Source: Schmidtea polychroa
Lineage: Eukaryota
Direction of reading: 5' to 3'
Assembly (NCBI GenBank): GCA_044892525.1
Contig: CM097886.1
Location: forward strand, 183,136,312-183,200,311
DNA length: 64,000 bases
Position numbers and translations under genes: made by a program. Shown one piece after another: positions 22,840 to 63,317 of this stretch. Below the pieces are notes generated by a model. It was not told the DNA's origin and did no database searches. It was given only the letters and a program-made list of their open reading frames with translations. Each line of letters starts with the position of its first letter. Within the stretch, counting starts at the first letter, position 1.

Positions 22840-23200
22840 TCAACAGTATCCGGAGGTTATATTTTCTGAGTTTCACACCCAGCTTCTGAATGTTATCTCA
22901 ATTGTGAAGAATGAATTGAAGGAAAAGATATAAATTAAAACATTTGCGGAATTACTTCTTACAAAATATAGCTTTTTAAAAAGTGAATTTTCGGAAATCT
23001 TTATAGCTTTCATGTTGTTTTTACACTTTCTGTTACAGGAGCTTTTCTATACAGAGAGGATATTTAGCAAATTCAACATTATCAAAGATTACAAAAGAAA
23101 TTCTATTGTCCAAACTAGACTACGTGATCTTGCTATCCTAAACATAGAACATGCAGAAGCAGATAAAATGGATCTCAAAGACCTTGGCAGTTGACGTTCC
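22840..23200 (+). mobile_element. hAT C-terminal dimerization-domain fragment (ZMYM1-like), copy A
   Basis: ERIFSKFNIIKDYKRNSIVQTRLRDLAILNIEH. Confidence 0.75.
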
Positions 23201-28512: not shown

Positions 28513-28686
28513 NNNNNNNNNNNNNNNNNNNNNNNNNNNNNNNNNNNNNNNNNNNNNNNNNNNNNNNNNNNNNNNNNNNNNNNNNNNNNNNNNNNNNNNN
28601 NNNNNNNNNNNNNNNNNNNNNNNNNNNNNNNNNNNNNNNNNNNNNNNNNNNNNNNNNNNNNNNNNNNNNNNNNNNNNNNNNNNNNN
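28513..28686. other. N-run (174 N)
   Basis: Flanks aacatttga / cctaaacaaactg are the same as for the 214-N run at 63104-63317. Confidence 0.9.
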
Positions 28687-36800: not shown

Positions 36801-39800
36801 TGTTGTTATCGATACAAGCTTACAAATTTGGAGCTGAATGCTGTTGGCATAAGCTTTAAAATTCTGAAATATATCCTCACCTCGAGTTTTACTTTTGAGT
36901 GGTATAATTGTTAATAATTCTTCCTTCGTAGAAAAATCTTTAAAGACCATTCGAATAAAAATTATAAGCTGCGAAATATCAGCCGCATCAGTTGATTCGT
37001 CTGCTTGCAATGAAAATGCGGTACAATTTCCTATGTCTAACATTAACTGATTTTTTAAATTGGAACTTATTTCTTGGACTCTCCGTGTAACTGTATTACG
37101 GGACAATTGCATATCAGTAATAGCAGAAATTATATCTGATTTATTTTTAAAATCACAAAATAATGATTCTGCCGCTTCTAAAAATGCTTCTTTTACAATT
37201 ACTCCATCACTAAAAGATTTCTTATTTTTTGCCAGAATGTAGCTTACCGGAAAGATGCAGCTGTAGCTGACTTTGATTTGGATGTTAACTTCGTAAAAAA
37301 TGACTGTTGAAAAGAAATGCATGTTTTCAGTTCCATGATTTTAGACTTGCGTAGTTCACTGTCAAGTGGATAATCAACTGCAAAAGTCTTATGAATTGTC
37401 TTGAAATGCCTTTCCAAATTCCCTCTTTTTGGTAATGAAATAGTAGCTTTACAAATTAAGCAACAACATTTACCTTTAATCATTACAAAAAAGTACTCCT
37501 TCTCCATTTCTTCGCTATAATGATAAGTCTTGGCTTTTTAATTTAGCATTTTTAAACAAAATTAATTTAACAAAAAAGCTTAAGAAAATTTTTCACTTTG
37601 TTACACCAACCAAAATTAAATTTAACTAAATAAACAAAATTAAATTAAACTAAATTAAACTAAATAACATTTTGGAAATAGTGAAATCAAAATTAAAAAA
37701 TGTTATTTAGTATTACCATAGAAATGGAACACAGAACATGAAAATTGGCAAAAAATTTAAGCATAAAATAGAAATTTTATATAAAATCTAAATTTATATA
37801 AAAAATATTTTTATGAAGATCTACTAAAAAATCCTTCGCGATCTACCGGTAGATCGCGATCGACCTTATGGGCACCCCTGTTCTAGATGTTCCCGTGGCA
37901 TTGTAACCAATGACCAAATAATAACCAAATCAAACATTTCATTTGGCACTCAAAATAATTATTTCACAGAAATTATTTCTATTTTCTTTAACAAATTAAT
38001 TAAAAGTTTTAGTTTGATAAAGTTTCACATCAATACAAGTATTAATATCGAAATAATAAAAGCAGATCGATTGCATATTAATTTAAATTAAATCAATTAA
38101 TTAATTAATCAATTAACTAATAAATAATTTACCATTTTCATTTCCGGAATATCGATTAATATTCTGTAAATAATAGAAATATAAAATTCAAATCAAATAA
38201 ATTGTGACATTTCCTCACCTCAACAGATCTCACAACATCGGCACCCCGGTTCACCAGTTGAGCACAAACATTTACCATCCCTCGAATAACTGCACAGTGT
38301 AGGCCAGTCAACCCCATCTATATCTCACATAATTATTCAATCAATAAACAACAAATCTCACAAATCCAGCATGATCAATATCAATTGATCGATCTATCAA
38401 ATATTCACAATTGTCCTCCAATCCACTCGCAATCGCCTCATGCAATGGAGTTTGTGAATACTAAATAATGCCAATATATCAATATCAATATTGAATACTC
38501 TATTGAATTACTTTGTTTTGTGTATTGGTATCGATCTCAAATTGCTGCAATACATTGATGCATTTCCTATGATGCAGCGAATGGGCCAAGGCCAATGCAG
38601 TCCCCATTGTCTACAAATATATTGATTTGATCATTTCAATAAACACATACTTCATTATTTGCATTGATATCTACAATGTCCTGATTATCTAGTATAAATT
38701 TGGTCATATCGGCATCATTATCAGATATTGCTGTGTGTAATATGGTGAAATTGACCTTGATAATAAATAAAATTAATTATTGATTTTGCATTATTCTGAT
38801 GCACCTTTTGTCGTGATTCCATCAGAATCATTCGTTCTTGTATTTCTTCTTGTATTTCCACGAATCCTTTTTCCTTTGCTTTGTCAATGGCCTTGATCCA
38901 TAACTGAATGATGAAATCAATGCTGATTTAATCAATTTCATCTCAAATTAGTTAATAATAATAATAATAATAATAACAATAATAACAAAAAACAGGTAAA
39001 TGATAAGGTAAGCATTTGCTGCAAAATCTTTATTAAGTGAGAAAATTATTTATATAAAATAATTCAATTCGATCTTTCATAATTTTGCTTCAATGTTGAA
39101 ATGCTTGCATGATTTCCTTTTAAAATTCATTTCTGATTTTTATTTGTTCAAAAATTGATTAATTAAAATTACTGAAATGTAAAGCATAAAATATTTACGT
39201 GTTGACATATTTGAAAATATGTCCTACCAGTCAACTCAGGAAATTATTCACTATAAAATAGCGCTTAAAAGATTTCAAATATCTCAACTGGTTCTACTGT
39301 AACTGATGTAAGCGCTTAGGAACACTAATCCCCTAGCCATGGGATATATTAGTCGCTATCATATTATTAATATATTATTATCATATCAGACTATTATCAT
39401 ATTATTAATTTTGATCCCAGAAATTATTTGTCGGAAACATTTTTAAAAACCTGTTTGTATGTATCCAATAGTAACAAATTATTACTATTATTATTATAAG
39501 AACTTATTTTAAAAATTTTACCACAGATTTCCATTGACATTATATTTATTTAAAAGCTTGACTATGAATCAGTAAATATATCGATATAATTGATATGCAC
39601 GAATTTTCGACACCGCCTTTTTCAATTGAATTATTATTATTAATATGATTTGACATAATGAAATAACAAAATTCATAAATGTATTTTATCACAATTTTTA
39701 ATTATTTAAACAAATTTAATATTTTGGTAAATGGTTTTGTGTGATTAATGCTTTTCTAATCACAACAATTCACTCCTCCTAATTTGATTGCTCTGCTGGC

Positions 39801-42800
39801 TATAGACGATCAACTGATAAATTCTCTAATACATAGCTTGAAATATTTTGGCTGCTTTTCTAATAGACGAAACGGACCATTATATGGAGCTTCTAATGAT
39901 TTCCGTACATCTTTTCTCATGTACACGAATTCACAATCCTTAATATATTTATTGATCGTCATACAATCTTGCAATGGTCTTTCGATTATTCTGAAGCTCT
40001 CAATAATTTCTTTAAATTGATATGGAGAAGCTTCTATTTATGAATTAAAAATAATTCCTGGTACAGCAAGATCACATTCAAATGCTTTTTGTGTCGGAGA
40101 ATAACCTGCTGAATCCCGACTGTTCCTTATCGTTAACAGTACCTGAGGTAAAACGTCAAACTTTTAATTTAATTTTATTCATTTTATTAATTTATTATTA
40201 ATTTTATCCATTGAAGCCATTTCTTGAGATTTTAGTGTCTGATGGAATTCTGCAACTTTACAATTGGCTTGGGAATGATAAGCGCATGTTTGATTTGTAT
40301 TTATTTCAAGAAAGTTGAACATATACTGGAATAAAGAGTTTGTAAATTGATCTGTTACAATTTCAGATGGGATTCCATATCGGGAAATCCCCACTTCAAT
40401 TAGTGATTTTGCCACAGTTTCTGAATCTATATATTAAATGGCCAATACCTCAGGGTAATATGTTTAACTATCGATCATTGTTAGTAGATAGGACTTCTCG
40501 TTATTTGCTAGGAAGATTTGCAATTCTGCTTTGATATGACGATATACTTTTGATTTTAAGCAGGAATCGCGTTGCTGACACAACATCTGGACATCCTTTG
40601 TCATCTTGTGTCATGTATATGAACTCAACATCAATATCTTGGCCATTCGTATTTCTGGATGAGCGACATATTTGGGTATATAGACAGTACTGTGCGAATT
40701 AGTGTGAATATGAAATAATTTACATGTTTTATCATCTAGTTATACGACCATGTCAAAATTAGCTCCAGTTTAGTTTTACTGTTCTTATATTTGTTGTGTA
40801 ATAACGTATTGGAGTTTACAGACGTGTTGTTATAGATAATTTAGTAAATTCTATTGTGCTTCCTTTAATTTTTTACTAAGACTATCCAAACTATTCTAAT
40901 CTTTGTTTCTTTCTTATTTTAAAAGATGAATGTTTCTCCCAAGAAGAGCACAAAAATTGTTACCTTAAGTGAACACATCAATGTATCAAAGAGATATTGC
41001 CAAAGAGTGTGGTGCGAGTTTAGGAGCTGTAATCAACATTTTAAAACAAAAGAAGGAATTTGAGACGGTTTAGGCGAATAGAAAAGGAAAATGTGGAAGG
41101 AAGAGGAAGACAATAATAGATGAATTTATAATAGGAGTAAGTAAATTGAATTCTAGAGAAAATAACCAGCAACTTCAGAAAGGCTTAGCACATGGTGGAG
41201 TTATTATTCCCGATTCCACAGCTTGACAATGGCTTATCAAAGTTAGAACAAGTCTAATAGACCTCAAAAAAAAAACAATTATTGAGCTTTGTTTAAAAAA
41301 GTGACAACGAAAACTTTACGACAGCTCATATCAATAGAATCATTAAACGCGATAAGGACGATGTTTTGATCTGGTTATTGTATAAAGGTACCGGATCCCT
41401 TGTGTCGGTTGAAGGCATGATAAAGGCGCTTTGTTTAATTTGTAGAAATATCGTAGCTGTTTTTAAAGATTATAATTTAAAACGGCATTATTTTCAAAAA
41501 TATGTTTCCACGTATGATGATTACGACGGAATGTATCGTAAAGATAAAGTAGCTGGACTTAAGGAAAATCTGTTTTCTCAACAAACATTTTTCAAGAGAA
41601 TTGTCACTCAAAATTATTCTGTCGTAAAAGTCAGTTATGTGGTAACAAATATAATTGCAAAGAAGTCGAAACCCTTCACAGATCGCAAATTTATTAAGTA
41701 ATGTTTGGAAAGTCTAGCTGACATTATTTGTCCAGATAAAAAATCAGACATATCAAAAATCAGTTTATCGCAACTAACTATAGGAGGACGAATTAAAGAT
41801 ATTCAGGACACCTTTGTCCATTGTGAGGCGTTTTGTAATTTGTATTTAAATAATGGTATGATGTTGTGCTTGTTTGATTGTATGCTGAAATCCTTACTTA
41901 TACATTAATTATTATTTTTTAGAAACTCATAAAACAAATTAACGTTATAATTTGTTTTAATAATATTTGTGTTTTTATAATAAACGTGTTTTAGTTATGG
42001 ATTCTATTAATACCCGTAGCTCTGTGGCTAATATGGCGACGACGATTGCAAATTTTATCAAGCCACAAGAAACATATGACATGAATTCAGACGTGGAAGA
42101 TTTTATCTTAGAAACGGAACGATTCTTCGAGATGACAAATATTGTCGATGAATACAGAAGCAAATTCGTCAAAGCTTTTCTATCAATCAATTCAACGAAG
42201 AAATATGAGTTGACTAATGAAACTCTGCATTATACAGAAAGATTAAGAAACGCTTTTGCTAAGAACAGAAGTCTTATCGATGATCTCAACGAAGCGCTAA
42301 ATTATCGTCAAGGAAATGAGGCTGCCGAAGAATTCTGCTCAAAAATTGAGAAACTTGCAAAAAATATTTTGAAGCATAAACTTGATGAAGAAGAACTAAA
42401 GAAATTTTTGCTATTCAATTCGCTTGAAGATAAAGAAGTTAAAAAAGATCTCAAAATGCAAGATTTAAAATCATTTGATGAAATGAAAGAAAGATTAAAG
42501 AGACACGACCAAGTTTCAAAAGAAATTAATGTATTTCATGCTGATGTAGCTTCAATGAATAAAACACAACGCTATGCTGATGCTGTTAAGAAGAGCTTAC
42601 CAAGATATAGTTATGATAACAGATCAATTCGAGAACGAGAAGCTAATCCCAGATTCAAAGATGAATATAAAAGAGAACCTCAACATAATCCAAGATTCAA
42701 AGGCGATCTTACCAGAGAACATCGATATGCTATTTCAAATGAATGAAAACCTATGAATAGAAGTAAGCCTTATAATACCAGGGAATTTCATTCGCGAGAT

Positions 42801-45800
42801 CATGTCCAAACAAATCAAATTTTGCGATGTTGGGCGTGCCACGAAGAAGGTCATAGAAGATCTGAATGCCCCAATATTCAATGTGCCCATTGTAAAAGAT
42901 CTGGACATTTCAAACATCAGTGCCATGAGTTATTTCCAGGCAGACGTCGAAAATTCCATAAATCAGTGGCTGCATTCGGTGACGAGGATTCAGAGGCTGA
43001 TTTTGAGTACCCAAATGGGAATGCTCCACCACACGAGGAGGTGATCGGAGCAATAAATTAAAGGTAATTAATGATATGAGTAAGGGTTGTATGATTTTGA
43101 ATGATTGTGATAGGTTGAATGATTGTGATAGTTTGAATGATAACTGTTGTGATGGTGTTTTTGATTATAGAAATTATATTAATATATACATTAATAAATT
43201 TTGTATGGATGAAGTTTTCAAAGACCCACCCCTAACTTCTAATGAACTAAATGTTCTTAATCGTGATAAACGGAATGATATAATAGTATACGATAAAATG
43301 CAGGGAAGGCCCAGTGTTACCGTAATGATTAATAATGTAAAATTAGTATGCCTATTAGATACTGGAGCTAAAATAAGTGTGATTGATTATAATATTTTTA
43401 AAATACTTGGAAATTTGAATATGACTACAAGTAATCTGAAATTAAGATGTGCGAATTATAGCCCGATTGAAATTTGCGGTAAAACTTTATTAAATGTAAA
43501 AGTTGATAAAATTTCTGATATTAAAAAAGTAGAATTCGTTGTAGCCAAAGATATAAACCCAAAGTTGATAGGAGGTATAGATTTTCTCGAAAGATTTGGA
43601 ATGCAATTGCAAATAGAAAACCGTACAGACGAAATAAATACAATTATGGAAAATTCATTTAATAACCACATAAGTGAAGATAAGATTATAAATAATTTAA
43701 TTTCCACGTTTGACGGTATTTTTATGAAACATAAATGGGATGTTGGAAAAACCGAACTATTAAAGCATGAAATACTTACTAAAGGTTATAATAAACCCAA
43801 GACGACAACCTATACATTTAATAGAAAAAATTGAAGAAAATATTCAAGAAATGTTGAAATATGGCATTATATATGAATGTACATCTCCTTGGAATTCTCC
43901 ATTAGTATGTGTTAAAAAGAAAAACAGTAGTGATATAAGAATATGCTTGGATTACCGTGCTTTAAATAATATAACCGAAAGACCTATTTTTCCCATTCCA
44001 AATACTGATGAATTATTAGATATTCTTGACGGAGCAAAGTTTTTCTCGACAATTGATTTAGGCAATGCTTATAATCAAGAAGAACTCGATGATGCATCAA
44101 AATTGAAAACAGCATTTCCGACAAAAAGCAAGCAATATTACTTTAACAGAATGCCATTTGGAATAGCAGCCGCACCAGCAACATTTCAAAGACTTCTCGT
44201 TTCCGCCAATGGAACATTAGTAAAAAGACTACACACATCAAACGAAACCATCATTTCATCATCAGAACTTTTCTTCAGTGCAGCAATGAATGAAGCAAAT
44301 TCAAAGCTATCCTTACATTCGAACTCAGACGCCATTAAAGGTTTTAATAACCCATCCAAAAATTTGGCAATTTTATATTGAGCGGTTCCTACCATCGATA
44401 ACACTGGTCTCATAGACATACCTGCTTTATGTACTTTTGGAAGACCATAAAACTGGTTTATATACAACGCCTGATAGTTTTTGTGAGTTTAAATATAAAA
44501 GGAATATGGTGAGAGGATTAGTGTTTCGTGCTTGGTCACTATCCTCCACGTTTGCTAATTCAGTAAAAAGTATTGATGTATTAGTTGAGTTGTTACTTAA
44601 AAATGGCTACTCTAAATCTTCTCTTGAGAAGATGACAAAAGTGACCGTGGATAAGTTAATGTTTAAATCTGATAACGTTGGTATGTGTACGTCTGAATCT
44701 GAGGTACCTATTGATCCTGAGGAAAGAACTATGTTAAATTCGGAAAGTGACAAGAATCGATCCAATCGCATGGAGCAGAAATATGTGTTAGTATTGCCTT
44801 ATTCGGAGGGTTTCAGAGAATTTAAACATAAAATTCTCAAATATGTAGACAAGGATCAATTCAGGATTGTTTCCACTTCTTGCAAAGTTAGCAGTATGTT
44901 TACTAGTAAATGTCCAACGCCAATTGGTTTGTGTTCTGAGCTTGTGTATCAATTTTCATGTAATGGGTGTAATGCCATATACATTGGAGAGACTGCCCGT
45001 CATCTCTGCACCCGAGTTCTTGAACACTGTCGACCATAAGGATTGACTAATATTAGTAATCATGTTAGGAAATGTGTCAGTAAAAAAATAGGTATCTCTG
45101 ATTTTAAAATTATTTCAAAAGGTTTAAGTAATTATTGGGAACGAGTAACTTGTGAGTCATTGTTGATTAGATATTTAAATCCAAAAATAAATGATCAAGT
45201 TGCCCGTTCCACGGAGAATTTGAATGTGTTTAAGTAATTGAAGGATGAAGGTTGGGAGTCGTGTTTGTGGTATAATTATGTTTGTGTTTTGTAAACTATG
45301 TAATTTTTTTTAAATTTCTTAACTTTATGTTGAATGTTAAATGTTATTAAATTAAAATTTAATTTTAAAATAATATGTATGTGGGGCTATGTAAAATATG
45401 GTTTGGTTTTTTAAAATATTGTTTTTGAAATATTTTTTTTAAAATTTTTGATACAGTTTGGAGATGATTATTATTAGTTAATTTGTTTAGATATTGCATA
45501 TTTTATGTCTTATTATTGATTATCCAGATTGCGGCCTGACGAAGATTGTTGTACAATTGAAATATATCGCGTTTATGTTGAATTTATTGAGTTGGCATTT
45601 CTGTATTATTAAATCATTGCCACGTTTTTTTGATTATTAATAATAATAATATTAATTATTATTATTATAACAATCACTAAATGATGGCATCGATTTAAAT
45701 ATAAATAAAACGACAATCCAATATTAATAACTTTTTTTTAAAATTAAGAAATAATGAAATAACAAGTGATTATAAAGTAAAATTATTTATTGGTATATTT

Positions 45801-46330: not shown

Positions 46331-49300
46331 TTTAAATCAATAAATAATAATAAATTAATAAAATAACTTGTCAATATATTATATAATTCAAATAAATCAA
46401 TAATTATTCCATTTCCACAAAGTTTATGAAATATTTCAACATAAAATCGATCGCCTTCACTCAAATGCGAAATTTAAAAAATTTAACAAATCGATCTGAC
46501 GCTTCATAAAATATTTATTTAAAATTCATAAATAAACCAATCAGATATTTTCTCACCGATTTGTCGTAAACCGTTTTCTTCATGATCGATTCGACAAACA
46601 GATGATGGCCTTGATTGACAGCCAATTCCAGAAATGACAGCTCGCCCTAATCAATATCAATACAAATCCAAATAATTATTTGACCTTACGATTCTGCGCT
46701 GCCCATTGATAATGTGAGCAGAATTGAATCTCTTGAACCCGCTCATGTGCCCGTGAGTGATGCAGCGATAAAGGACGCACTGAAATTATTTATTTATTGA
46801 TTTATTCAAATAATCAGCTCACTTCTTTCATTAAATTTGCATTTTTGTCCATTTTTGCTGTCAGCAATTCAATTGCATTATTGATTTCCTATTGGTGAGA
46901 ATATTAATTATATCAATCAATAAGTCAATCAAACTTTATCATCAATTGGTTTGTCAAGGATTAATTTAATAATCTTATCAGCATTGGACTCGATTGCTCC
47001 CTCCAGCACAGCCAATCCAGGCTAAATATCAATTATTAAACAATCAGAATATCACAAATTTACATAAATATTCTGCATTATGAAATCAGAAGATTTGAGC
47101 AAATCACCAAATGCGATTGCATCATCCCGTTCAATGGCAGGAAATAACTGAAATATTTATTCAAATTGATTCATAATGAAATAATTCACACTTTCGCCGC
47201 ATGAGTCAATAATTCCACGCAATCAGCACGATTATATTGCTTTGCATAATCCAGCGGACTCTTTCCACCCTAAATAAATAATCCAATCAAAATATCCGAA
47301 TCAGCGAATCATTTAAACATCCCCATTCACAAACAGATCATTAAAGCCCTGTGGCAATAATTGGGTCTAAAACCGACACTGCAAAACCGCGTGCAAAGTG
47401 TAAATACCCGTGAGATATCATGCTAAAGAAATAGTTGAGAAATGGCAAATCTGATCAGAATTACTAGCCAATGGAATTGCCGATTTGCATTTATTAATGA
47501 ATTCTGTCAGTGGAGATCTTCAAATGAAGTCGACATTTCAATATTGCTTCATTCATTTCAGACATTTACTAAGACTGCATAAAATTCTCCAGTGCAAGGA
47601 ATAAATTGCCAGAAAAGCTGCTGGAAAAGCTTTTCATTCATTTTGAGGCGTTGCAGAAAATATTTCAAATAGCAAAAATTATTTCTGTTGAGAAGTGAAA
47701 AAGTGAATTAAAAATAAAATCGATAGCAAGGAAATAGCCAATTAAAATGCTGAATTTAATGTGAGAAGTAGAGAAATGCAAATTTACAGGAAATATTTTA
47801 CATATCAAAACGTAAACATTATTTGTGATGAACATCTGGCCTGCACAATCAATATTCAGTGGCCATTGTTCTGCTTGCATTGCAATTATTGGCCTGATCT
47901 GTTTCACGGTAATTTTGATACAAATGCTATGTAAATATATAATTATTATTTTTAGCTTTGTTTTTATCATTATCATTAAATTATTTGTGAAATGTCCGAA
48001 ATATTGGCAAATACAAATGAGAAACCCGATGAGTATTCTGGCAATGAAAGCGATGAACATTATGACAGTGAATATATCATACAATAGTGACAGCGACACT
48101 CCTGACAATGAAGGAGCTTCTTCCTCCTCAGAAAGCGAGAGTGAATATGAGAAATTTACAAAATAAAGGTGCGAATGTTACAGTTGATGAGCAACTATTT
48201 CCAACCAAGCTCGATGCTTTATAAATCATGACTTTGTTCTCACAATTTAGAAAGGTAAACCGAACTAAAGTTATTTTTAAACATAAATTCTCTTTCATTT
48301 TATAATAATATATCTGACCGAATGGCAAGGAAATGTAGCGTCAAATCTGGGCCTAGAATATGGCCGCTTCAAGTACCTTTCAATATGCTAGGCTTAGCTG
48401 CAATGAATGCCTCGATACCATATAAGGGAACCGCAGCAGATAACATATCAATATGCTAGGCATAGCTGCAATGAATGCCTTGATACCATATAAGGGAACT
48501 GCAGCAGATAACATATCAATATGCTAGGCCTAGCTGCAATGAATGCCTCGATACCATACAAGGGAACTGCAGCAGATAACATATCAATATGCTAGGCCTA
48601 GCTGCAATGAATGCCTCGATACCATACAAGGGAACTGCAGCAGATAACATATCAATATGCTAGGCATAGCTGCAATGAATGCCTCGATACCATATAAGGG
48701 AACAGCAGCAGATAACATATCAATATGCTAGGCCTAGCTGCAATGAATGCCTCGATACCATACAAGGGAACTGCAGCAGATAACATATCAATATGCTAGG
48801 CCTAGCTGCAATGAATGCCTCGATACCATATAAGGGAACTGCAGCAGATAACATATCAATATGCTAGGCCTAGCTGCAATGAATGCCTCGATACCATATA
48901 AGGGAACCGCAGCAGATAACATATCAATATGCTAGGCCTAGCTGCAATGAATGCCTCGATACCATATAAGGGAACTGCAGCAGATAACATATCAATATGC
49001 TAGGCCTAGCTGCAATGAATGCCTCGATACCATATAAGGGAACTGCAGCAGATAACATATCAATATGCTAGGCATAGCTGCAATGAATGCCTCGATACCA
49101 TATAAGGGAATAGCAGCAGATAACATATCAATATGCTAGGCCTAGCTGCAATGAATGCCTCGATACCATATAAGGGAACTGCAGCAGATAACATATCAAT
49201 ATGCTAGGCCTAGCTGCAATGAATGCCTCGATACCATATAAGGGAACCGCAGCAGATAACATATCAATATGCTAGGCCTAGCTGCAATGAATGCATCGAT

Positions 49301-52297
49301 ACCATATAAGGGAGCTGCAGCAGATAACATATCAATATGCTAGGCCTAGCTGCAATGAATGCCTCGATACCATATAAGGGAATAGCAGCAGATAACATAT
49401 CAATATGCTAGGCATAGCTGCAATGAATGCCTCGATACCATATAAGGGAATAGCAGCAGATAACATATCAATATGCTAGGCCTAGCTGCAATGAATGCCC
49501 CGATACCATATAAGGGAACTGCAGCAGATAACATATCAATATGCTAGGCCTAGCTGCAATGAATGCCTCGATACCATACAAGGGAACTGCAGCAGATAAC
49601 ATATCAATATGCTAGGCATAGCTGCAATGAATGCCTCGATACCATATAAGGGAATAGCAGCAGATAACATATCAATATGCTAGGCCTAGCTGCAATGAAT
49701 GCCTCGATACCATATAAGGGAACTGCAGCAGATAACATATCAATATGCTAGGCTTAGCTGCAATGAATGCCTCGATACCATATAAGGGAACAGCAGCAGA
49801 TAACATATCAATATGCTAGGCATAGCAGCAATGAATGCCTCGATACCATATAAGGGAACTGCAGCAGATAACATATCAATATGCTAGGCCTAGCTGCAAT
49901 GAATGCCTCGATACCATATAAGGGAACTGCAGCAGATAACATATCAATATGCTAGGCCTAGCTGCAATGAATGCCTCGATACCATATAAGGGAACTGCAG
50001 CAGATAACATATCAATATGCTAGGCCTAGCTGCAATGAATGCCTCGATACCATACAAGGGAACCGCAGCAGATAACATATCAATATGCTAGGCCTAGCTG
50101 CAATGAATGCCTCGATACCATATAAGGGAACTGCAGCAGATAACATATCAATATGCTAGACCTAGCTGCAATGAATGCCTCGATACCATATAAGGGAGCT
50201 GCAGCAGATAACATATCAATATGCTAGGCCTAGCTGCAATGAATGCCTCGATACCATACAAGGGAACAGCAGCAGATAACATATCAATATGCTAGGCCTA
50301 GCTGCAATGAATGCCTCGATACCATATAAGGGAACTGCAGCAGATAACATATCAATATGCTAGACCTAGCTGCAATGAATGCCTCGATACCATATAAGGG
50401 AGCTGCAGCAGATAACATATCAATATGCTAGGCCTAGCTGCAATGAATGCCTCGATACCATACAAGGGAACAGCAGCAGATAACATATCAATATGCTAGG
50501 CCTAGCTGCAATGAATGCCTCGATACCATATAAGGGAACTGCAGCAGATAACATATCAATGTGCTAGGCCTAGCTGCAATGAATGCCTCGATACCATATA
50601 AGGGAACTGCAGCAGATAACATATCAATGTGCTAGGCCTAGCTGCAATGAATGCCTCGATACCATATAAGGGAACAGCAGCAGATAACATATCAATATGC
50701 TAGGCCTAGCTGCAATGAATGCCTCGATACCATATAAGGGAACCGCAGCAGATAACATATCAATGTGCTAGGCCTAGCTGCAATGAATGCCTCGATACCA
50801 TATAAGGGAACTGCAGCAGATAACATATCAATGTGCTAGGCCTAGCTGCAATGAATGCCTCGATACCATATAAGGGAACCGCAGCAGATAACATATGCTG
50901 CTCAATACAAAATCAGAAAGCGTGTTACCAGTAAATATATCGACACCTTCAAATAGCCTCCATCTCACGCGTAAATGGCGCATGATTGGATATTGCAATA
51001 ATAATAACATCACAAATAATTATTTTCATTGCTTTTAATGAATTATTTCCAGTTTAATAATGAATATTATATAATAATTATATTTATTTATTATTTGATA
51101 ATATGGCAGCGCATGTAAGGCTACTTTATAAAGGTTATTTGCTAATCAATCGCTTCTGCTTGGGGAGCAAGATATTATATTTGATGGCCCATTGAAGCCA
51201 TTATGACTGTTGCTGGTAGCAATTGCTATGATTGTTATTGGCCGTTCTAGTGTTAGTTATCTAAATTGATAAATTATTGGCTGTTGGCAATGCAATTTGC
51301 TGCGGCGGCTGGTAAAGGGCAAGATCATATGATAATGCTGTCACATCGATATTGGCCATATCGGGCCTGCAGGGAGCTATTGCATTCTCACCCCGCTAAC
51401 GGTTCCATTGACACCTCATTCTGTGCTCTCTTGCCTCTCACTAGAGCTCTCTGAGGCAGTTCTCAATGGCATTTCATTCATTGCTCCTTATGCAATCCAT
51501 TTCACATATTCAATTAACCAGATCGCAACTCACCAGATTTAATTGATATTTCATTATATAAAATGTTAATGTTTACTTTTGTTCGGCAATCGATTCGGCA
51601 TTTCCGCTGCAGCAATAATTTCAATATTTCTGAATGCCCATTGCTGCTAGCAGAATGAATCGCTCTCCATCCCTGCAATTTATCAATTAATTATTTATTT
51701 GCAATGATTATTTACCGCTTTGTCCTCAGATTCCACATCGCAGTTGCGGTCAAGCAATAATTTCAATATTTCTGAATGCCCATTGCTGCTAGCATAATGA
51801 ATCGCTCTCCATCCCTGCAATTTATCAATTAATTATTTATTTGCAATGATTATTTACCGCTTTGTCCTCAGATTCCACATCGCAGTTGCGGTCAAGCAAT
51901 AATTTCAATATTTCTGAATGCCCATTGCTGCTAGCATAATGAATCGCTCTCCATCCCTGCAATTTATCAATTGATTATTTATTTGCAATGATTATTTACC
52001 CCATTGCTCTCAGATTCCACATCGCAGTTGCTGTCAAGCAATAACCTGGCAATATCAACAAATCCATAACGGCAAGCAAAGTGAATGGGCAACCAGCCCT
52101 GAAATCAGAAACATTAACCCAATAATTCACATTGCCAATCAATCTCACATAATCATCAACAATCCTATGCACAAATTCTCCCCTCAAATTATCCCTGACG
52201 CCCTCCACATTTCCCCTCATCAAGTGCTCCTTGAAACATTGAAAATCCCTGCAATGCAAATTATCCAATGCAAATCATAATCAATATTTCACCCCAT
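30827..52297 (-). CDS. Ankyrin-repeat + RING protein, copy B, 23 exons, ~958 aa
   Basis: Same splice sites as copy A and all exons appear open. 5' exons: 52293-52297, 52149-52248, 52000-52098, two extra exons 51858-51956 and 51716-51814, 51577-51672, 47192-47269. Large introns 47270-51576, 38904-46556, 32359-38132. RING exon ends at stop 30827-30829. A 14-nt insertion (non-multiple of 3) falls inside predicted intron 31849-31902, supporting the model. Confidence 0.87.
33891..34850. mobile_element. 960-bp non-autonomous TIR element (Tc1/mariner-type MITE), copy-B-specific
   Basis: TIR cacctaaccgcgaaa / tttcgcggttaggtg (imperfect to ~33 bp); TA at 33889-33890 and 34851-34852; copy A has the empty site gttgatTAtttgttggg near 5158. 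Confidence 0.93.
35018..37915 (+). pseudogene. Actin pseudogene (copy B), split by the 2.4-kb hAT
   Basis: Same actin segments as A 5325-6140; continues after the TSD at 37881. Confidence 0.88.
35481..37880 (-). mobile_element. Full-length Buster-like hAT transposon (2400 bp); GTF2IRD2/EPM2AIP1-like transposase with two frameshifts
   Basis: 12-bp TIR caggggtgccca / tgggcacccctg; perfect 8-bp TSD ttctagat (35473-35480, 37881-37888) with central TA; ORFs 37244-37507, 35802-37322 and 35693-35884 join into ~600 aa ([51 protein letters not shown]). Confidence 0.96.
39778..40670 (-). mobile_element. Gypsy integrase remnant (copy B)
   Basis: Homologous to A 7990-8880. Confidence 0.8.
40685..41417 (+). 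mobile_element. Tc1-like remnant (copy B)
   Basis: Homologous to A 8897-9625; cagtactgtgc at 40685. Confidence 0.7.
41418..41820 (+). mobile_element. hAT (GTF2IRD2-like) fragment (copy B)
   Basis: [22 protein letters not shown]; homologous to A 9626-10030. Confidence 0.8.
42033..44193 (+). mobile_element. Gypsy gag-protease-RT fragment (copy B)
   Basis: Gag [11 protein letters not shown].. with an in-frame TGA at 42744-42746 and two CCHC knuckles ([28 protein letters not shown]); protease LLDTGA; RT frameshifted near 43787. Confidence 0.93.
44194..45581 (+). mobile_element. Penelope-like element with inverted RT fragment (copy B)
   Basis: Homologous to A 11523-12910; GIY-YIG ORF broken by a stop at ~45039. 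Confidence 0.9.
45532..45581 (+). ncRNA. Hammerhead-like motif (copy B)
   Basis: Identical to A 12861-12910. Confidence 0.5.
45822..46228 (-). mobile_element. IS630/Tc1-like transposase remnant (copy B)
   Basis: Translations identical to A 13154-13554. Confidence 0.6.
47992..51030 (+). mobile_element. piggyBac remnant (copy B)
   Basis: Homologous to A 15301-16710, with an expanded internal array. Confidence 0.8.
48382..50896 (+). repeat. 68-bp minisatellite, 37 units (copy B)
   Basis: Unit starts at 48382+68n up to 50830. Confidence 0.97.
51612..52044 (-). repeat. 142-bp exon+intron unit present 3x (1x in copy A)
   Basis: gcaataa anchor at 51612, 51754, 51896 and 52038; unit = 99-nt exon + 43-nt intron. 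Confidence 0.95.
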
Positions 52298-53770
52298 CTT
52301 GATATTTCCTTTCTGTTTTATCTATCAATTAATTCAAAAATCAATAAATTTAATTATAATTTAATTAACAAGTTCAAAATCAAAAAATCTTACTTCCTAA
52401 AATCCAAATGAAATCAATTAAATAGCAGCCAATCAATTCTCAAGGCTAAATAATAAATTTGAAGCGATAAAACAAATCAATTGCAATCAATAATAAATGT
52501 AATATATATAATGGAATTGTCAGGCTGATAAAATTGATATTCAATATTCAATGCGACAACCGAACGATCTGACGGATTCCCCCGATGCGGCAATTATTAT
52601 CAATGATTACAACATTCCATGAAGCTGCAAATATTATTATTATTCTTTGGTAACTTTCAAATAATTTGCAAGCATTACACAAATGCCTAAATATTATTTT
52701 AAATGCTCAATTATATCCACTCAAATCCTCATGCTAATAAATAACAATATTAATAACAATTTTATACAAATCATTTAATTGCTTTATAATTGCCATTATT
52801 TCATAACATCACATATAATTGTTACATAAAATGAATAAATTTATTAATTAAATAATAAATCAAATAGAAATTATATTAATAAATACAAAGATGAAAAACA
52901 TAAAAAATTAAACATTTGAATAATTATAAAAGCCAACATAATTATATAAACAAATATACAAAAATATTATAATGGTAATATAATTGAAAGCACATTAACG
53001 CAAAACAAATATATTTCACTAAAACTGGAAATAATAATGCTTAAATTAAATCAGCAAATGTTTAACAAAAAATATCATAATATTCTAAAAATTTAAATAT
53101 TTTAATTTCAAATATATAATGCATTAGTAAGATGGGAAACTACTTACAAAATTATTAAAAGTTTGTTTAAAATTAATGGTTTTTTGAATTTGACTTTGGA
53201 ATTTGATTTACTGTTCACCTCTTAAGTGGTAATTGATAACATTTTTGTGAACATAATTTTTCAAAGTTTCTCTATGTCTCAATTCGAATTTGGAATTTTC
53301 AGTTTTCATCATTATTTACAATCGTCTTTCTTCCAAAAGTGTATTGTTGGTTTCTGAACTATGCCGAAATTCCGAGCATTTTGAAAGCTACAGAATATTA
53401 TTATTTTTACTTCATGATTCATTAGTCGAGAACACTTCAGATCTATTTCAGGACGAGGAGATTTTAATCGGTTTTTCCTTATTAGTTTCATTCATTAAAT
53501 TGCTTCAAGTTACGATCAAGGACATTTTGGATTGGTACTTATTCTGAGGATCCATAAAAACTCGAGGTTTCGAGCTTATATGATATCACTGGAGTAATTA
53601 CAAGATATAATTCTGCGTTCAATAAGGCTCATTTATAATTATTCATCTGACAATTCCACTCATATTTCATTAATGATTTTGCCAATCATGACAGAAAATA
53701 GCTATTTTAGCTCCTCGGTTTATAAAAAATTGATCAAAGATTGAACCGTAACTAATAAAGCAATTGTTGG

Positions 53771-56700
53771 GTCGCTTAGGGGTGTGTCATTTTATTGCTA
53801 AAATGTTTTAGGGGTATTATATGTAAGGAATTGACTCCTTTCTAAACGCCTTAATGACTATTGTACTTTAGACCATCTGTGTACCCATGTCAGAGGTGTA
53901 CGCAATGATTGAAAATCAATGACCAGGTGAGCTCTATTGCTAAAATTACTCCTTATTGCATTTTCTTTTCAGATTCTGGAATCCGATAAAAAGTCTTACG
54001 TCATTATTCAGTATCTGTTCTATCGCTAGATCATTGTCATGTTTTCATTTAACTGTGGTCTTCATTGCCCATTTCAATAATCTATTTTATGTATCCTTAT
54101 GATTCTATAGCCCTTCAAATGTTTTATGGTCTGTTCTAATAACTACCTCTGTTCTATATATATGGCCTAAATTATTTCTATTGTTGAATATCTTAATTGG
54201 GCACCTTTTAACGTTTTACTTGCATTAGCTATTACATAAACTTTACATTTTTCTTCTTCTTGTATTAAGACTGCCCCTACGGCTTTACCGCTGGCGTCAG
54301 TCATAACTATAAATTGTTTTTTAAAGTCTGGGTATCTTAATATTGGTGCAGTTACTAATTTTTCGTTTATTGATCAATGTTTTTGATGTTTTGCTGTCCA
54401 TTTCTTTTGTGGTTTATTGATTTTATCGTTTATACTTTGTACTATGAACACATTTTTACTTTCTCCCTTGGTTTTTATTCCTTTAGTTAATTCTATCATC
54501 GGTGCTTCTATTTTTGCATACTCTTGTATAAATTTACGATAATACCTTGTTAAACCTAAAAATCCTTGCACTTGTAATGTTTTTGGGACTGGAAACTTTT
54601 TTACAGCTTCAATTTTATCTGGGTTTAGTGTTATGCCCTCCACACTAACAATATGTTCCAAATATAACGCTGAGGGCTCCGCCCATTTACATTTAGTTGA
54701 TTTAATCTTTATCTTTGTCTTTCTTAATCGCTGTAATACGTTTGTAATGTCTTTTAAATGTTCCTCAAATGTTTTTGATGATATTAGTATGTCGTCCATG
54801 TAAACTGCGCAATGATGTACACCTACTAATATTGTATTCATTAAACGCTGGAAGGTTGATGGTGCATTGGTTAACCCAAAAGGTAATCTTTATTTGCATA
54901 AATGGCTGAAAAATATTTAGAGTCTCTTAATTTATCAAATTGTTCTTGTGCTTTTGGAAATGGGTATGAGTCTTTTACTGTTACGTCATTTAGTTTATGA
55001 TAGTCAATGCACATTCTTATTTCTCCATCTTTTTTTCTAACTGGTACTATTGGTAGTGCCCATTGTGAAAAACTTTGTTTAATTACACCTGCCTGTTTTA
55101 ATTCTTTAATTTTTCGTTTTATTTCCTCCTTCAATTTATAAGGTACTCATTAGGGTCTTTGTTTTATGGGTCTATCATTATCTGTATCTATCACATGTCT
55201 AATGATGTCTGTATCTCCTAAATTAAATTCATGTTTAGCAAAAACATCGTTACATTCATCAATTAAGGTTTCTAATTGTGATTGTTGATTTTCATTTAAA
55301 TATTTATTATCAATTTTTACTTTATCGTAGAATTTTATGTTATTTGGTTTAACCAGTTCGACAACGTTTTCACTCGTATTCTCCGTTATTCACATCTCAC
55401 TTATTTCAATAATTTGTTCTGCTTTTCCTTTAAATAGCTTTCATAGTTTTGTATCTTTATGTATTTTTATATTATTATTTTCATAATTTGCAAATCGTAT
55501 CAGGATTATTCCGTTTTTTGGAGTTACACACTCGTCTATCAGCATACATTGTGATTTTTTGTGATTGCCGTAACAAGCTCAAAAATAAAAGTGTCCTCAC
55601 TTTTGATATTAACTTTTACAGGAACTATATGACTACATTTGTATTCTAGCTCTAAACCTTCTAAAACGATTACCTCTGAAAATTTTGCGTTACGGTGGTT
55701 TGCTTTCCTTTTAACTGTACTATTTGTTAAATCTATCACACAATTTTCTAGTTTATTAAGTATGTCCATTCCAAGAACACATATGCTTTTGCACTCCTCA
55801 GCGACTTTAATATATATGATTTATTGTTTGACTTGCCAAATGGGCAGTTAGCTCAATGTTTTCTTTTAATGGAATATCGTGTGCTGACAATGATACCACT
55901 CTTTCTCTTGTCGTTACAATATTTTTCTTTTGATTCTCTGTTAATTAACCCTCTCTTATCAATGATGCTGCTGCTCCTGTATCAACTTGAGCATATATGC
56001 TTATAATATCTATTGTTATTTGAAGTAGTGGTCTTGCTTCATTTGCCGATCCCCATAGGTCATTTATGCAAAGTTCCAAACTATAGCACCCGTATATATT
56101 TTCTGGGTATACCATGACAACCTTTGCTTAGTTTTGGCATCTTAATTTCAATATTATTTTCCATTTCTTTTAATAAATCTCTTTGATTATCGTATAGGCC
56201 TTTGCTTGGCTGTTGTTCTGATTCTTCCGGGTTTCTTCATCTTTTTCTATGATCATTATTTGCTGCTAGTCTTTTCTTTGTCTTTTTATTAATCGGATCT
56301 ATTTGTCATGTTTTGCTGTTATTAAATATTTCGCTATGAATGGACAAAAACATGCTATTAGCTTGTACGAATTTCCAAACACTTGTCTGAGCTACTTTAA
56401 TGACACTAATGATGGGCAAATCATTTTCAATAGAGTCACTGTATAGTATATTCATAATATTGCTGAGAACATGTTTCCGAGGATTGCGAAATATCCCAAT
56501 ATAATATATAATATTTGGTATAATACTCAGTATACCACCTTTTTTTAAATGTTCCTCTACCTGAATAGTTTCCATATATACTTCATAATCATTGTAATTG
56601 CTCCGTTTATGACCTAATTGGTTTTGACTTCCTTAGTTATCGTTCTTAATTAGTTATTTCTGTTGACCATTTTAGTAATTCCCCTTCTTCTGTTTACTCT

Positions 56701-57101
56701 CGTTTATCCTACTGTTTAGATAATTGCTCTCTAAATTCTCAAATTGTTTATTTCCCCAAATTGCCGCGCTCAGGTTTTCTTCATCGCTCGGGTTCTCCAT
56801 TGGCTCGGACTTCCCATTAGCTCCGGTTATCCATTAGTCAATTAATTAATAGTTTGTGTTTTTCCATATTTGGCTGTTTTTCGACCTTTCTAAACATTTT
56901 CTAACAATTTATTGCTCACTGTTCTTCATTATTCCCAAATCTACAGCTGTCCCGTTTTTCAGCTTCAATTTCGATAACATTTCACTTTATCCCACTTCCT
57001 CAGATTTGCAAATGTTTTTATTTCGTGTCTGATTGTACTATTTTATAGTTCTGTTTTTGTCATATCTTTCTTTGCCATTAATTCTCCGCTTGATCACCAT
57101 T
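53771..57101 (-). mobile_element. Decayed Gypsy element (copy B)
   Basis: ORF translations identical to copy A at offset +34591. Confidence 0.85.
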
Positions 57102-57430
57102 CTCTTTCGTTCAATTTTGGTTTTCTTTTTACTCGAAATTATTTAATTTAACGTAATTTAATAATTCACTTTTACAACCTCATCATAAATAATATTTGTA
57201 AATATTATATTAATAATTAAACATTAGGTAAAATTATAATATAATTATATAATTGAAATTAATAGAAATATTGTAGAATGATGTTTTCTTGCTTTATATA
57301 TTGTTGGTGTAAAATAATCCTCTTGTTTTGTACTGGACAAGACCCATGCTCAAAATAATCAACGTTTTACGGATTTCGTAATGTGACAAATTTTTTTGGG
57401 GTACTCGAACCAAAATATATAGTCAAATTA

Positions 57431-57791
57431 TCAACAGTATCCGGAGGTTATATTTTCTGAGTTTCACACCCAGCTTCTGAATGTTATCTCAATTGTGAAG
57501 AATGAATTGAAGGAAAAGATATAAATTAAAACATTTGCGGAATTACTTCTTACAAAATATAGCTTTTTAAAAAGTGAATTTTCGGAAATCTTTATAGCTT
57601 TCATGTTGTTTTTACACTTTCTGTTACAGGAGCTTTTCTATACAGAGAGGATATTTAGCAAATTCAACATTATCAAAGATTACAAAAGAAATTCTATTGT
57701 CCAAACTAGACTACGTGATCTTGCTATCCTAAACATAGAACATGCAGAAGCAGATAAAATGGATCTCAAAGACCTTGGCAGTTGACGTTCC
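57431..57791 (+). mobile_element. hAT dimerization-domain fragment (copy B)
   Basis: ORF 57603-57785 identical to A 23012-23194. Confidence 0.75.
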
Positions 57792-58714
57792 ACACGGGAT
57801 GTTTATATTCTCACGATGAAATGTTCTTATGAAATATGTAATTAAGTTCCATTATCGCAGTTGTCGCAGACCGGATGTCTACGTGATGGATGAATTGGTA
57901 AACCTAATCTCGTAGTACAGAATCGAATACATGTGCTTTTGAATTTTTTCCTTGGGAAAATACGATGGAGCAATGAAATGGTCGTGTATGCTTCTTGGAA
58001 TAATAAAATTTACTGATATCGGAAATTGGCTTGGAAAAATCTATCTAGCAAGATGCAAAGAAGTCGAAAATTCAGAATTGGAGTCTAAAAAGAAAATCCT
58101 ATTCATTGAACCGATGATATTTAATGTCTAATCGTTGTGAAGGTAGTCATGGAAAAATTCGTTTCCAATTGTTGACGAGTGCATCATCATCGAGGAGTGG
58201 AGATTTGCTCATAGACTAAAGGTAATATTCCGTGTAGTGAGAAGTCGTTGCCTCGGTATCACCATTCATGCGGATCAACTGAGAACTACTGACACAAGTG
58301 CCATCAATTCTCAATCAACCCCCCGAACGGGTCAAACCACATCTATAAATCATATTAAGTTATAAAAAATTCTCAATGCAAATGTTTAATACATTTATAT
58401 GAAAAATTCAAATAGTTATAAGTTCAATCAAGGTCAATATTCAGCAGTTATCTCGCCCAAGATGGAATCCTACGAAAGTTTCTCTCTCCCACAGCACAAT
58501 AAATTTCTCATTTCAGACTTATTATCACACGTCTCTCCATCATGCCTCTATTTTCTCATCTCCTTCCTTTAGTTGGTCATCTCATTCGATTTCCATAGAT
58601 GTCGGATTTATCCCCTCATCTTCACATGTCCATGCGATTTCCCAATGTCCTACCAAAGTTTCTGACATTCAACTATTTTCTTTCTTACTCAGTCCAATTT
58701 CTAGTGGCTGTGAT

Positions 58715-61526
58715 TAGGGAATCCATTTTTTAACAAAAACCGAATTCCGGAATTTTCGGATTTACGTAAGATGAAATTCAGAATTCCGGAATTATTCTGG
58801 AATTGAAAAATAAAAAGTCAAGAGCAAAAAAAATGTTAACCAGCATAAATTTATTTCAAAGTAAACAAAGAAAATTTTTATTTTTGTATTAATATTAATA
58901 AAAAAAACATAAACAAAACAAATTCAATATTTAAAAAAATATAATATAAAAATAAAAATTACTATATAAATAAAAATTTATGTTTGCTTTTTGAAGAAGC
59001 TTCTCAGCATACACAAATTGTCCAATGTAGTATCATTAAGTCTTGACCTAATTTTTGTTGAAAATGCTCCAGCGGCGGAAAAGGCTCTCTCTGCTTCAAC
59101 ACTTGTTGGGGGAATACACAAAAGGTTTTGTAAATTATTTCCAAAAATGGTCCACGAAATACACCTTCGTCCCAAAATTTTAATTCATTTCGAATAGCAA
59201 ATTGAATTGATATTTTTTTTTTAAGTTTTTGTAGTCGGCTGTAAAAGTGACTGCTGGATTTTTTGCTGCAACAATTTCTGTAAGGAGGGCTGCGTTTCAC
59301 TTTCAAAAGATTCGTTGGGTTCAAATACTAAATCAGAATCAGACTCGGAATCCGTTGAATCAACTTCAGCAGTAATTTCATCATTAAGTCGCCGGGCCAG
59401 TAATAGAATAATTTTATTTATTTCTGTTTTCGAGTGACCGGAAATGCTCTTGTGAATTTTTGTTTTGCCACCATTATGCAAATATTGTAGCACATCAGAT
59501 AAAATAGTTCTTCTCCGATTGAACTGGAGTTCTATCTCTTTTTTCAATTCAAGGGCAAATTCGTCATTCTCACTAAAATTTTGTAACATAAACGTAAATG
59601 TTGCATCCGCAGAAATTAAATTAGCATCTGCACGGCATAATGCGTCTACGGTTAATTTTACTGGCATCAAATTTTTAGATATTCGTGATACCGAATCCCA
59701 TTCTGATTCATATAAAATTATGTCCGTTTCAATGTCAATTAATGCTTTTTTAATGAACTTTTCAAAATATTAAAACGCTCTAACATAGACAACATGCTAT
59801 TGCATCTAGTTTTCGAATCTAACACAAGCTGTAATTCTTTTTTATGATCTTGCTTCACGTATTTTTGAAGCACTTCTTTTTTCAAAGAAGAACGACGAAA
59901 GGTTTTAACAATTTTCCGAACTTTTGTGATTAATGCTCGTAGTTGAAAGTTTTCAGTTGTTTCCATAACATCAGTTTCAATTCCCATATCTACCCGCATT
60001 CCATTGTCATCATCCTCATCATCAGTAAGATTTTCTTCATCTACCTCAAAGTTCCGTTCATTTTCATTATTGTCCTGCTCTACTTCGTTTTCTGTTGCAT
60101 TATCTACTAAATCCAACGTTTGCTTTTTATAGAGTACATTACCAATTGCAATTTGAATTGCATGAGCAAAACATAAAATTTGTTCGCAGGATAACAATCT
60201 ACTAACTTTTTGCATCATGGAGGCACTATCTCTAACAATGCACAAAATATCATTTCCAATATTTAATTGGCATGATTCAAGCTTTTTTTCCAGCAATTTT
60301 ATACAATCTTTAGACGCAAATCGGCCATTTTTACGAGCCAATCCCAAATTCCAGACCCGATCTCCTGATCCATGCACGTTAATATTTCGAGAAGAAGTCC
60401 ATTCGTCAAGTGTCAGATTGAAACGTACGTTTCTGTTTTTTTCAGAAATAATTCCCGAAATTATCGACTGCCGAATTTTTTTGCTGTAATCCATCACGAC
60501 TTTTTGTATACTGGTAGGTGATTTCGGAATATCACAAAATCCCCGCGTTCATAAACATTTTCTTAAATCGTCTGAACTACAAAATATGCGAAACGGTAAT
60601 CCGTCTGAAGCTACCATTCGAGATATTACTGCGGCAAAACTTTCGTCTACTTTTGAAATATAAAAATCTTTAATCGTTTTGATTTTTGTAGCTAAATCGC
60701 CGGTATTCGCACCAGCAGCATCCGTATCATCAATTTTTCGTTTATTTAAAATCTTGTTATGTTTAGTCCGCAAATGGGTGCGTATGGGTGTTGTACACCC
60801 ACCCAATATCTTTAAAGCCTTCCTACATTGTGTACATTTCGCCACTTGAGTTTTTGTCCCTCGTAAAAAATGAGTCCACACCAAATTTGAAGTACTCTCT
60901 TTGGAGACATCTATAAAAATTTTGTCTTGCTTATCCGCATTCCTTGGGATTAAACATATGTACACAAGAAATATATGAAATTTTGAAACTAATAAAACCT
61001 ACCTATATCAAATGCTACCGTGAAGAATTGAACTTGAATGGTTAATTAAATATTTATATTATTAAAATAAAATGAAATGATTTGCTGATTAGTAAATTTA
61101 ATATTAAATATTAGACAAGAGGACGTTATTAAAATGATAATGATTTACTGTTTATTTATACTAAATTTACTATTACACTTAAATATAACATATAACACAA
61201 CACAACAAAGGAAAAAACATTTCTATTATGATATAATTTCACAAAAAATTTAAATGTCAAAACGAATAACATTATTTTTATTTCTCATGGCAAACTGTTT
61301 GTATTTTTTTTTAAAAATAAATCGTTACAATACAAGGTAATAATATAGTTTTTTTGTATAATTTTTTGCCAGTCGCTGGAATTCCGTGTAATTTGTTAAA
61401 AACAAAAAAATATTTAAATGCGAATAATCGGGAATTCGATTTATTTCAATTCCGGAATTTCGAATATAAAAAACAAGGCGGAATTTCGGAATTCCGAAAT
61501 TTCGAAATCCGGATTTCGATTCCCTA
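58715..61526 (-). mobile_element. Ac/ZBED-like hAT transposon (copy B)
   Basis: TIRs tagggaatc / gattcccta; ORF translations identical to copy A. Confidence 0.92.
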
Positions 61527-63103: not shown

Positions 63104-63317
63104 NNNNNNNNNNNNNNNNNNNNNNNNNNNNNNNNNNNNNNNNNNNNNNNNNNNNNNNNNNNNNNNNNNNNNNNNNNNNNNNNNNNNNNNNNNNNNNNNN
63201 NNNNNNNNNNNNNNNNNNNNNNNNNNNNNNNNNNNNNNNNNNNNNNNNNNNNNNNNNNNNNNNNNNNNNNNNNNNNNNNNNNNNNNNNNNNNNNNNNNNN
63301 NNNNNNNNNNNNNNNNN
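63104..63317. other. N-run (214 N)
   Basis: Same flanks as 28513-28686. Confidence 0.9.

Follow-up and report, generated by a model that had tools for sequence, protein, structure and literature searches.

The stretch of DNA analysed here, called the window below, comprises 64,000 nucleotides of Schmidtea polychroa (assembly GCA_044892525.1, contig CM097886.1, positions 183,136,312 to 183,200,311 of the forward strand), and positions are counted from its first letter. The window contains a large head-to-tail duplication with 97-100% identity between the two copies; copy A lies at about 1400-29369, and copy B starts at about 30100 and reaches the window end. Each copy carries a minus-strand gene of many exons. 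The only matches of the gene products are to ankyrin repeats and, at the C-terminus, to a C3HC4 RING finger, and the two copies are members of a head-to-tail array of genes of about 29-35 kb. The subject of this study is a short tandem array in the ankyrin-coding part of copy B, in which a 142-bp unit occurs three times and two extra exons, N1 and N2, lie between exons 3 and 4. The features of the array and its counterpart in copy A are as follows.

51611-52044, minus strand: tandem array of three 142-bp units and a closing 8-nt TTATTGCT (Tandem Repeats Finder; register by 142-nt steps from 52098)
52000-52098, minus strand: ankyrin exon 3 of B, 99 nt, phase 0, with an unusual tail ending SNG (Pfam Ank 29.5 bits; open frame; RNA contigs splice its 3' end onward)
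51858-51956, minus strand: extra exon N1, a hybrid ankyrin repeat of 99 nt with AG/GT splice sites (Pfam Ank 31.1 bits, cut-off 21.1)
51716-51814, minus strand: extra exon N2, a copy of N1 including the 43-nt intron (142/142 identity)
51577-51672, minus strand: ankyrin exon 4 of B, 96 nt, with the head of N1 and N2 bar one base (Y to S) and a distinct tail (Pfam Ank 26.6 bits)
51673-51715, 51815-51857 and 51957-51999, minus strand: 43-nt GT..AG intron (read from the sequence; RNA contigs show removal of the copy at 51957-51999)
17254-17491, minus strand: counterpart in copy A, with exon 3 at 17491-17393, one intron and exon 4 at 17349-17254; a single unit and no hybrid exon (A/B alignment)

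Tandem Repeats Finder reports a period of 142, 3.1 copies, 97% matches and a score of 819 at 51611-52044, and a unit-by-unit reading of the minus strand agrees with it to the base. The original prediction, made from the sequence alone, had described a tripled 142-bp unit at this place, and both its exon coordinates and its 33-residue translation of the new exons proved exact. In minus-strand order the array runs from exon 3 (52098-52000) through an intron (51999-51957), N1 (51956-51858), an intron (51857-51815), N2 (51814-51716) and an intron (51715-51673) to exon 4 (51672-51577). Each unit begins within one ankyrin exon, takes in the 3' part of that exon and the 43-nt intron, and closes with the 5' part of the following ankyrin exon. 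It runs from the Leu-Leu-Leu codons of one repeat to the Leu-Leu-Leu codons of the next, and is offset by about half a repeat. The word TTATTGCT occurs in B at 52044-52037, 51902-51895, 51760-51753 and 51618-51611, and the reported array is bounded exactly by the first and last of these sites. N1 with its intron and N2 with its intron are identical at 142/142 positions. The 43-nt intron has four occurrences in the window compared to 0 expected by chance; the copies at 51673-51715 and 51815-51857 have a T where the copy at 51957-51999 and the intron of copy A have a C. Every exon has an AG acceptor and a GT donor and all are in phase 0, and the reading frame is open through exon 5 (126 codons in A, 192 codons in B), so the intact splice sites and in-frame outcome that had been predicted hold. 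The frame would also stay open if one or both of the new exons were skipped.

Across the array, the alignment of A and B has one gap of 284 nt, and the number of full repeats between the N-terminal cap and exon 5 is two in A and four in B. The unit number is accordingly one in A versus three in B, and homologues have 2 or 3 middle repeats. Head-to-tail copies with a period of one exon plus one intron, a hybrid junction, and a reference copy (A) without the duplication are present here, and are characteristics of an exon-unit tandem duplication or coding minisatellite.

The composition of the extra exons can be read directly. N1 and N2 each have the first 54 nt of exon 4, followed by TTATTGCT and then the last 37 nt of exon 3. 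The 8-nt TTATTGCT is the longest exact word common to exons 3 and 4 and is found at offset 54 in both, which agrees with the earlier claim of an exon 4 head and an exon 3 tail joined within this word. The hybrid exons match exon 4 of B at 61/62 nt, and exon 3 plus intron of A at 77/80 nt. All of these exons pass as ankyrin repeats when compared to Pfam PF00023, and the hybrid exon outscores both parent exons (31.1 bits, compared to 29.5 bits in exon 3 and 26.6 bits in exon 4). When the unit was searched against the whole window with blastn and tblastn, only the array and its counterpart in copy A were matched, and neither relic nor reverse-strand repeat exons were found in the window.

Ordinary homologous recombination between exons 3 and 4 was considered as the founding event and rejected, since in register the two exons are identical at only 51/96 positions (53%) and share no word longer than 8 nt. 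The founding junction is therefore best described as a microhomology event at 8 nt. The original prediction had called the process in-register recombination; this description suits the junction, which lies at the same offset in TTATTGCT in both exons, and could suit a later step from two to three units, but it does not suit the founding step at 53% identity. We consider it probable that the presence of three units in B compared to one in A reflects a hybrid unit made at microhomology, followed by exchange or slippage that changed the number of units. A one-repeat-out-of-register exchange or a template switch at TTATTGCT would have produced the hybrid unit, whether in the present lineage or at an earlier point in the history of the family. 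The unit number would then have been altered by ordinary unequal exchange between sister chromatids or paralogues or by replication slippage among identical units, processes that can readily raise or lower it. The latest step in B would be very recent, because two of its units show no difference. The resulting protein may have a longer target-binding groove on an E3 ligase with fast-diverging surface residues.

Several observations weigh against this reading, and they concern both the tail of the hybrid exons and the reach of the available RNA and DNA contigs. The tail of N matches exon 3 of A at 35/37 nt and exon 3 of B at only 32/37 nt, so a simple duplication within B needs further changes or a second parental copy. 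Either exon 3 of B changed later at five bases, or two different members of the array took part in the exchange from which the unit arose. In protein, the tail of N equals the exon 3 tail of A at 11/11 residues, and this favours an alternative in which one or two hybrid repeats were already present in the ancestor. Unequal exchange between the identical heads of a hybrid exon and exon 4 would then have removed them from copy A, and the units of B would have been homogenised later by exchange or conversion.

The direction of change can be addressed with homologues, which were obtained by a whole-library search with a 212-residue exon and by word-based searches (P0003, P0041) and are all unnamed UniParc entries. 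The relatives found are about 45-56% identical over the stretch tested, and neither this genome's own annotated protein nor other array members were found by these searches. P0041 and P0155 include the N-terminus, and both begin like the window gene. Their repeats follow the same order: a repeat with an exon-3-type head and tail, then an exon-4-type head with an exon-3-type tail, then an exon-4-type head with a distinct QRKC... tail. P0041 has two middle repeats that are unlike each other, and P0155 has three, two of which are nearly identical. As this layout is shared, the hybrid repeat type must be an old one in this family and was not invented by copy B. The number of hybrid repeats has changed repeatedly in the family, including a recent duplication in P0155, and since repeat number has changed at the same site in relatives, the site behaves as a small coding minisatellite. 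Beyond the N-terminal domain of the predicted protein P0155 (residues ~330-757), the sequence is periodic over a long distance and includes six more motifs resembling the tail (NIECE/NIEYE), of which the entire protein has nine. The gene model there seems to run, with changes of frame, across many further, degenerate copies of the repeat unit, and unit expansion may be far greater at that locus.

The claim of a gain in B stands in that B has two more hybrid exons than A, but not as a statement of direction, as P0041 and P0155 carry the same hybrid layout and A may be a contraction. The presence of 2 and 3 hybrid-type repeats at the same place in these proteins is consistent with loss in A, and, in mechanistic terms, a deletion between 54-62 nt of identical sequence would be a simpler step than the founding of a unit at 8 nt. 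However, N is near-identical to the flanking exons in both of its halves and in the intron, as a young duplication predicts; in old units, both halves would have had to undergo conversion. N1 and N2 are also identical to each other. With N nearly identical to its neighbours and N1 identical to N2, the units of B are either young or recently homogenised. Loss in A is a real competitor but clearly the less probable of the two, and a microhomology-made unit with later changes in number is still preferred.

Evidence on expression and on the presence of the hybrid exon in other animals comes from short assembled contigs, namely those of the RNA runs X1 and X2 and of the DNA-type runs X15 and X23. 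Joints in X1 and X2 remove three introns, one of 72 nt in the 5' untranslated region (UTR), one of 44 nt after ATGGG, and the 43-nt intron after exon 3; these joints are absent from X15 and X23. The joints 52321>52394 (the 72-nt 5'-UTR intron) and 52247>52292 are found in both X1 and X2, and splicing at the 3' end of exon 3 is seen as the joint 51955>51999 in X1, while X2 has a loose end there. Contigs of both RNA runs also continue past exon 4, which ends at 51577, as loose ends into exon-5-like sequence. The 72-nt intron indicates that the transcript has one more upstream exon, and the exon numbering used earlier, although correct in its coordinates, is therefore one too low for the transcript. 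A copy A-type junction, with an exon 3 tail ending TGG joined to exon 4, is present in X1. Another RNA junction, of a tail ending GGG to an exon starting GYRAIHH, and an exon 2 variant that is one codon longer each come from another family member or allele.

The hybrid junction itself is spanned by a 52-nt RNA contig (X2 record 19, 51861-51912), in which exon-4-type sequence is joined to an exon-3-type tail, and among the DNA contigs, record 27 of the independent run X23 contains the hybrid junction followed by the intron. Hybrid-type exons therefore exist in other animals and are transcribed. Summed depth in X23 inside the unit reaches up to thirty times the flank depth, which indicates that there are many related exons in the genome. 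These data confirm that the gene family is transcribed and spliced as modelled and that a hybrid-type exon is present in RNA.

The contigs are less favourable with regard to copy B itself. The RNA animals differ from the assembly, with 18-26% of sampled words matched in the RNA runs and 47-72% in the DNA-type runs, and there are fixed differences between the RNA-run animals and the assembly at 51878 and 52020. Neither the N-specific last codon GCG nor an N-N or N-exon 4 junction was seen in any RNA contig of X1 or X2, which are of another strain and in which contigs drop rare variants. Given these differences and losses, N1 and N2 are putative exons of B's own mRNA. This bears on the possibility that the extra exons are real DNA but unused, either skipped or part of a silent copy B, and that the protein is unchanged. 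The missing junctions speak for this possibility, the more so as A-type and other paralogue junctions were seen, and skipping would keep the frame. Yet the splice sites and introns match, bar one mid-intron base, an intron that has been shown to be spliced, a hybrid-type exon is found in RNA contigs (X2 record 19), and homologous proteins contain such repeats, so disuse of the exons is considered unlikely.

No contig spans the array. Short contigs cannot count identical units, so that the figure of three units is that of the assembly; X15, the run nearest to the assembly, has no depth over 51650-51751. The lack of a spanning contig and the identity of the two new units would be expected if the unit number, or the A/B duplication as a whole, had been mis-assembled from alleles or paralogues. 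Over ~8.4 kb upstream of the gene, A and B are also 100% identical (18206-26573 vs 52797-61164). However, the array is only 434 bp and fits within a single long read, the independent DNA run X23 has a contig (record 27) with a hybrid-type exon and the intron, and there are no mismatches between the B-type flanks and X15. A and B also differ by many substitutions, by transposon insertions and in satellite length, and an assembly artefact is thus very improbable.

The identical ~8.4-kb stretch contrasts with the gene body, which differs by 0-3%, and suggests recent conversion or exchange among array members; identity next to a diverged gene body is as expected if sequence exchange among the members is continuing. 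A second length change is found ~680 bp from the 142-bp array, where a 68-bp satellite with 96-97% matches lies in the large intron after ankyrin exon 4. It has 13 copies in A (15689-16573) and 37 in B (48380-50896), and is likewise larger in B. The proximity of this change suggests that the neighbourhood of the 142-bp array is prone to unequal exchange.

The amino acid sequence has diverged in the same region in which the repeat number has changed, as the original prediction had proposed. Substitutions between A and B number 8/195 nt in exons 3-4 and 3/1071 nt in the adjoining sequence (Fisher P = 3e-5), and a further Y/S difference in exon 4 is masked by the alignment gap. All of the A/B changes in exons 3-4 are non-synonymous; this pattern alone is not significant (about 0.075-0.10 by chance), but the clustering is. 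Exon 5 has 7 A/B substitutions in 78 nt. There are many multi-base replacements at loop and helix-1 surface positions, and whole codons have been replaced between A and B at the end of exon 3 (GAC AAA TGG to AGC AAT GGG), in exon 4 (TGC CAT to AGC AAT) and in exon 5 (ATA to TAT). Six of the eight repeat positions in exons 3-4 that vary between A and B coincide with the seven ankyrin positions that we take to be those randomised in libraries of designed ankyrin repeat proteins (DARPins; hypergeometric P = 1.7e-4). The clustered changes could be due to either selection or short-patch conversion. A 9-nt word, AGCAATGGG (minus strand), is found four times in the window compared to 0.46 expected, always in the array of B (52000-52008, 51921-51929, 51779-51787 and 51637-51645). 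One occurrence closes exon 3 and the other three lie in the loops of N1, N2 and exon 4, with different letters in copy A at both kinds of site, and the word is possibly a short templated patch.

The other features of copy B that have been assigned are as follows.

52149-52248, minus strand: exon for the N-terminal cap helix pair (RNA joints; open frame; the MGDFQCF N-terminus matches homologue P0155)
47192-47269, minus strand: exon 5, the closing repeat of the N-terminal ankyrin domain (tblastn with P0003; splice sites and open frame)
30839-32356, minus strand: C-terminal exons, including the RING finger (tblastn; A equivalents at 2137-3667)

The ATG (52297-52295) is in a separate exon, which ends at 52293, lies upstream of the cap exon and is preceded by the 5'-UTR intron. 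Exon 5 of B, the equivalent of which in A is at 14503-14580, is separated from exon 4 by a 4.3-kb intron containing the 68-bp satellite. The N-terminal ankyrin domain has one repeat per 99-nt phase-0 exon, with 43-nt introns between them, and the 33 residues per exon with cap exons on both sides are consistent with a continuous capped solenoid. In the RING exon of A (2137-2277, minus strand), Pfam PF13920 (zf-C3HC4_3) is matched at 34.2 bits (cut-off 27), and the equivalent in B is at 30839-30970. The ligand pattern C-x2-C-x10-C-x-H-x2-C-x2-C-x6-C-x2-C is legible at the C-terminus, with eight metal ligands. The remainder of gene B is present, with no stop within the exon-matching stretches and with exon boundaries refined as far as exon 5. 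Judged from its domains, the encoded ankyrin and RING protein is a probable single-chain E3 ubiquitin ligase. A ligase of the Mind-bomb (MIB) type was considered and rejected, as the gene lacks the MIB/HERC2 and ZZ domains that define this type, with only ankyrin and RING matches to Pfam in P0003, P0151 and the scanned window exons.

Exons of 99 nt that each encode one 33-residue ankyrin repeat are known from vertebrate ankyrin genes, and in LPA the exon-containing tandem units of kringle IV-2 vary the number of protein domains between alleles. Unlike these, the unit of copy B measures only 142 bp and has an offset of half a repeat, which makes each new exon a hybrid of its two neighbours. More generally, repeat domains expand by internal tandem duplication, exon-bounded repeats are copied as exon units, and recombination has been favoured over simple slippage (Bjorklund, Ekman and Elofsson 2006, PMC1553488). 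In that survey, ankyrin domains mostly duplicate several repeats at once and breakpoints could not be located. Copy B is similar in that a repeat domain has been lengthened by the copying of an adjacent segment, but here the unit is a single repeat, the breakpoint is resolved to 8 nt within exons, and the event is young enough to be read directly.

The closest described system is that of the Ectocarpus LRR and TPR genes, in which each repeat is encoded by one small exon of fixed length, recent neighbouring duplicates are near-identical apart from how many repeat exons they have and in what order, and the residues at the surface diversify (2012, PMC3341825). In both systems, neighbouring genes differ in repeat-exon number, 13 vs 17 in Ectocarpus and 2 vs 4 here. 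However, the Ectocarpus genes are algal and combine an LRR or TPR fold with a ROCO or NB-ARC partner, while the window gene is from an animal and combines ankyrin with RING. Repeat exons are shuffled between loci in the alga; here the duplication is in place and in tandem with a junction inside the exon, and the introns in the window are free of relic or reverse-strand exons.

In DARPins, 33-residue modules are stacked between caps, and what they bind depends on a small set of surface positions and on how many internal repeats there are (PMC8683736). The window gene differs in being natural, germ-line encoded and fused to a RING finger, and its product is a putative binder. TRIM5 and TRIM22 are an example of a tandem cluster of RING E3 ligases under positive selection (PMC2151084). 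These genes resemble copies A and B as neighbouring paralogous E3 ligases with a fast-changing target-recognition part, but their recognition domain is SPRY rather than ankyrin, and a link to pathogens is not part of the evidence from the window. No paper describing this ankyrin-RING gene family was found in a literature search.

The triplication is a real new instance of a known mechanism. As tandem exon duplication in repeat proteins is textbook knowledge, it adds little to theory by itself, but it is an unusually legible change in repeat-protein length, with the unit, the 8-nt junction and an unchanged sister copy in one window and relatives changed at the same site. Its value comes from the context, a tandem array of probable E3 ligases in which codons for the ankyrin surface diverge while the surrounding kilobases stay identical. 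If the array is a true recognition repertoire, then variation in repeat number would be one of its two sources of diversity. A more speculative and unlikely extension is that the 142-bp unit is an expandable cassette throughout the family which, together with a replacement of contact residues far faster than change in the surrounding DNA, yields a germ-line repertoire of DARPin-like binders, possibly directed against parasites or mobile elements, with changes perhaps targeted by short-patch paralogue conversion rather than arising from chance mutation and selection. Such a repertoire would vary both in its paratope and in its number of internal repeats.

Other differences and landmarks in the window lie outside the ankyrin exons. 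Transposon remnants are found inside the identical ~8.4-kb stretch, with RVT_1 at 54374-54841 and zf-BED at 60549-60965. Two insertions are specific to B and are both in introns of the ankyrin-RING gene. The first (35771-37880, ~2.1 kb) has an open frame of 512 codons with a weak match to DUF4371 (hAT-like) beside a zinc-finger frame, and the second (42094-42956) is ~0.86 kb in length. Runs of N are present at equivalent positions of A and B, at 28513-28686 (174) and 63104-63317 (214), respectively.

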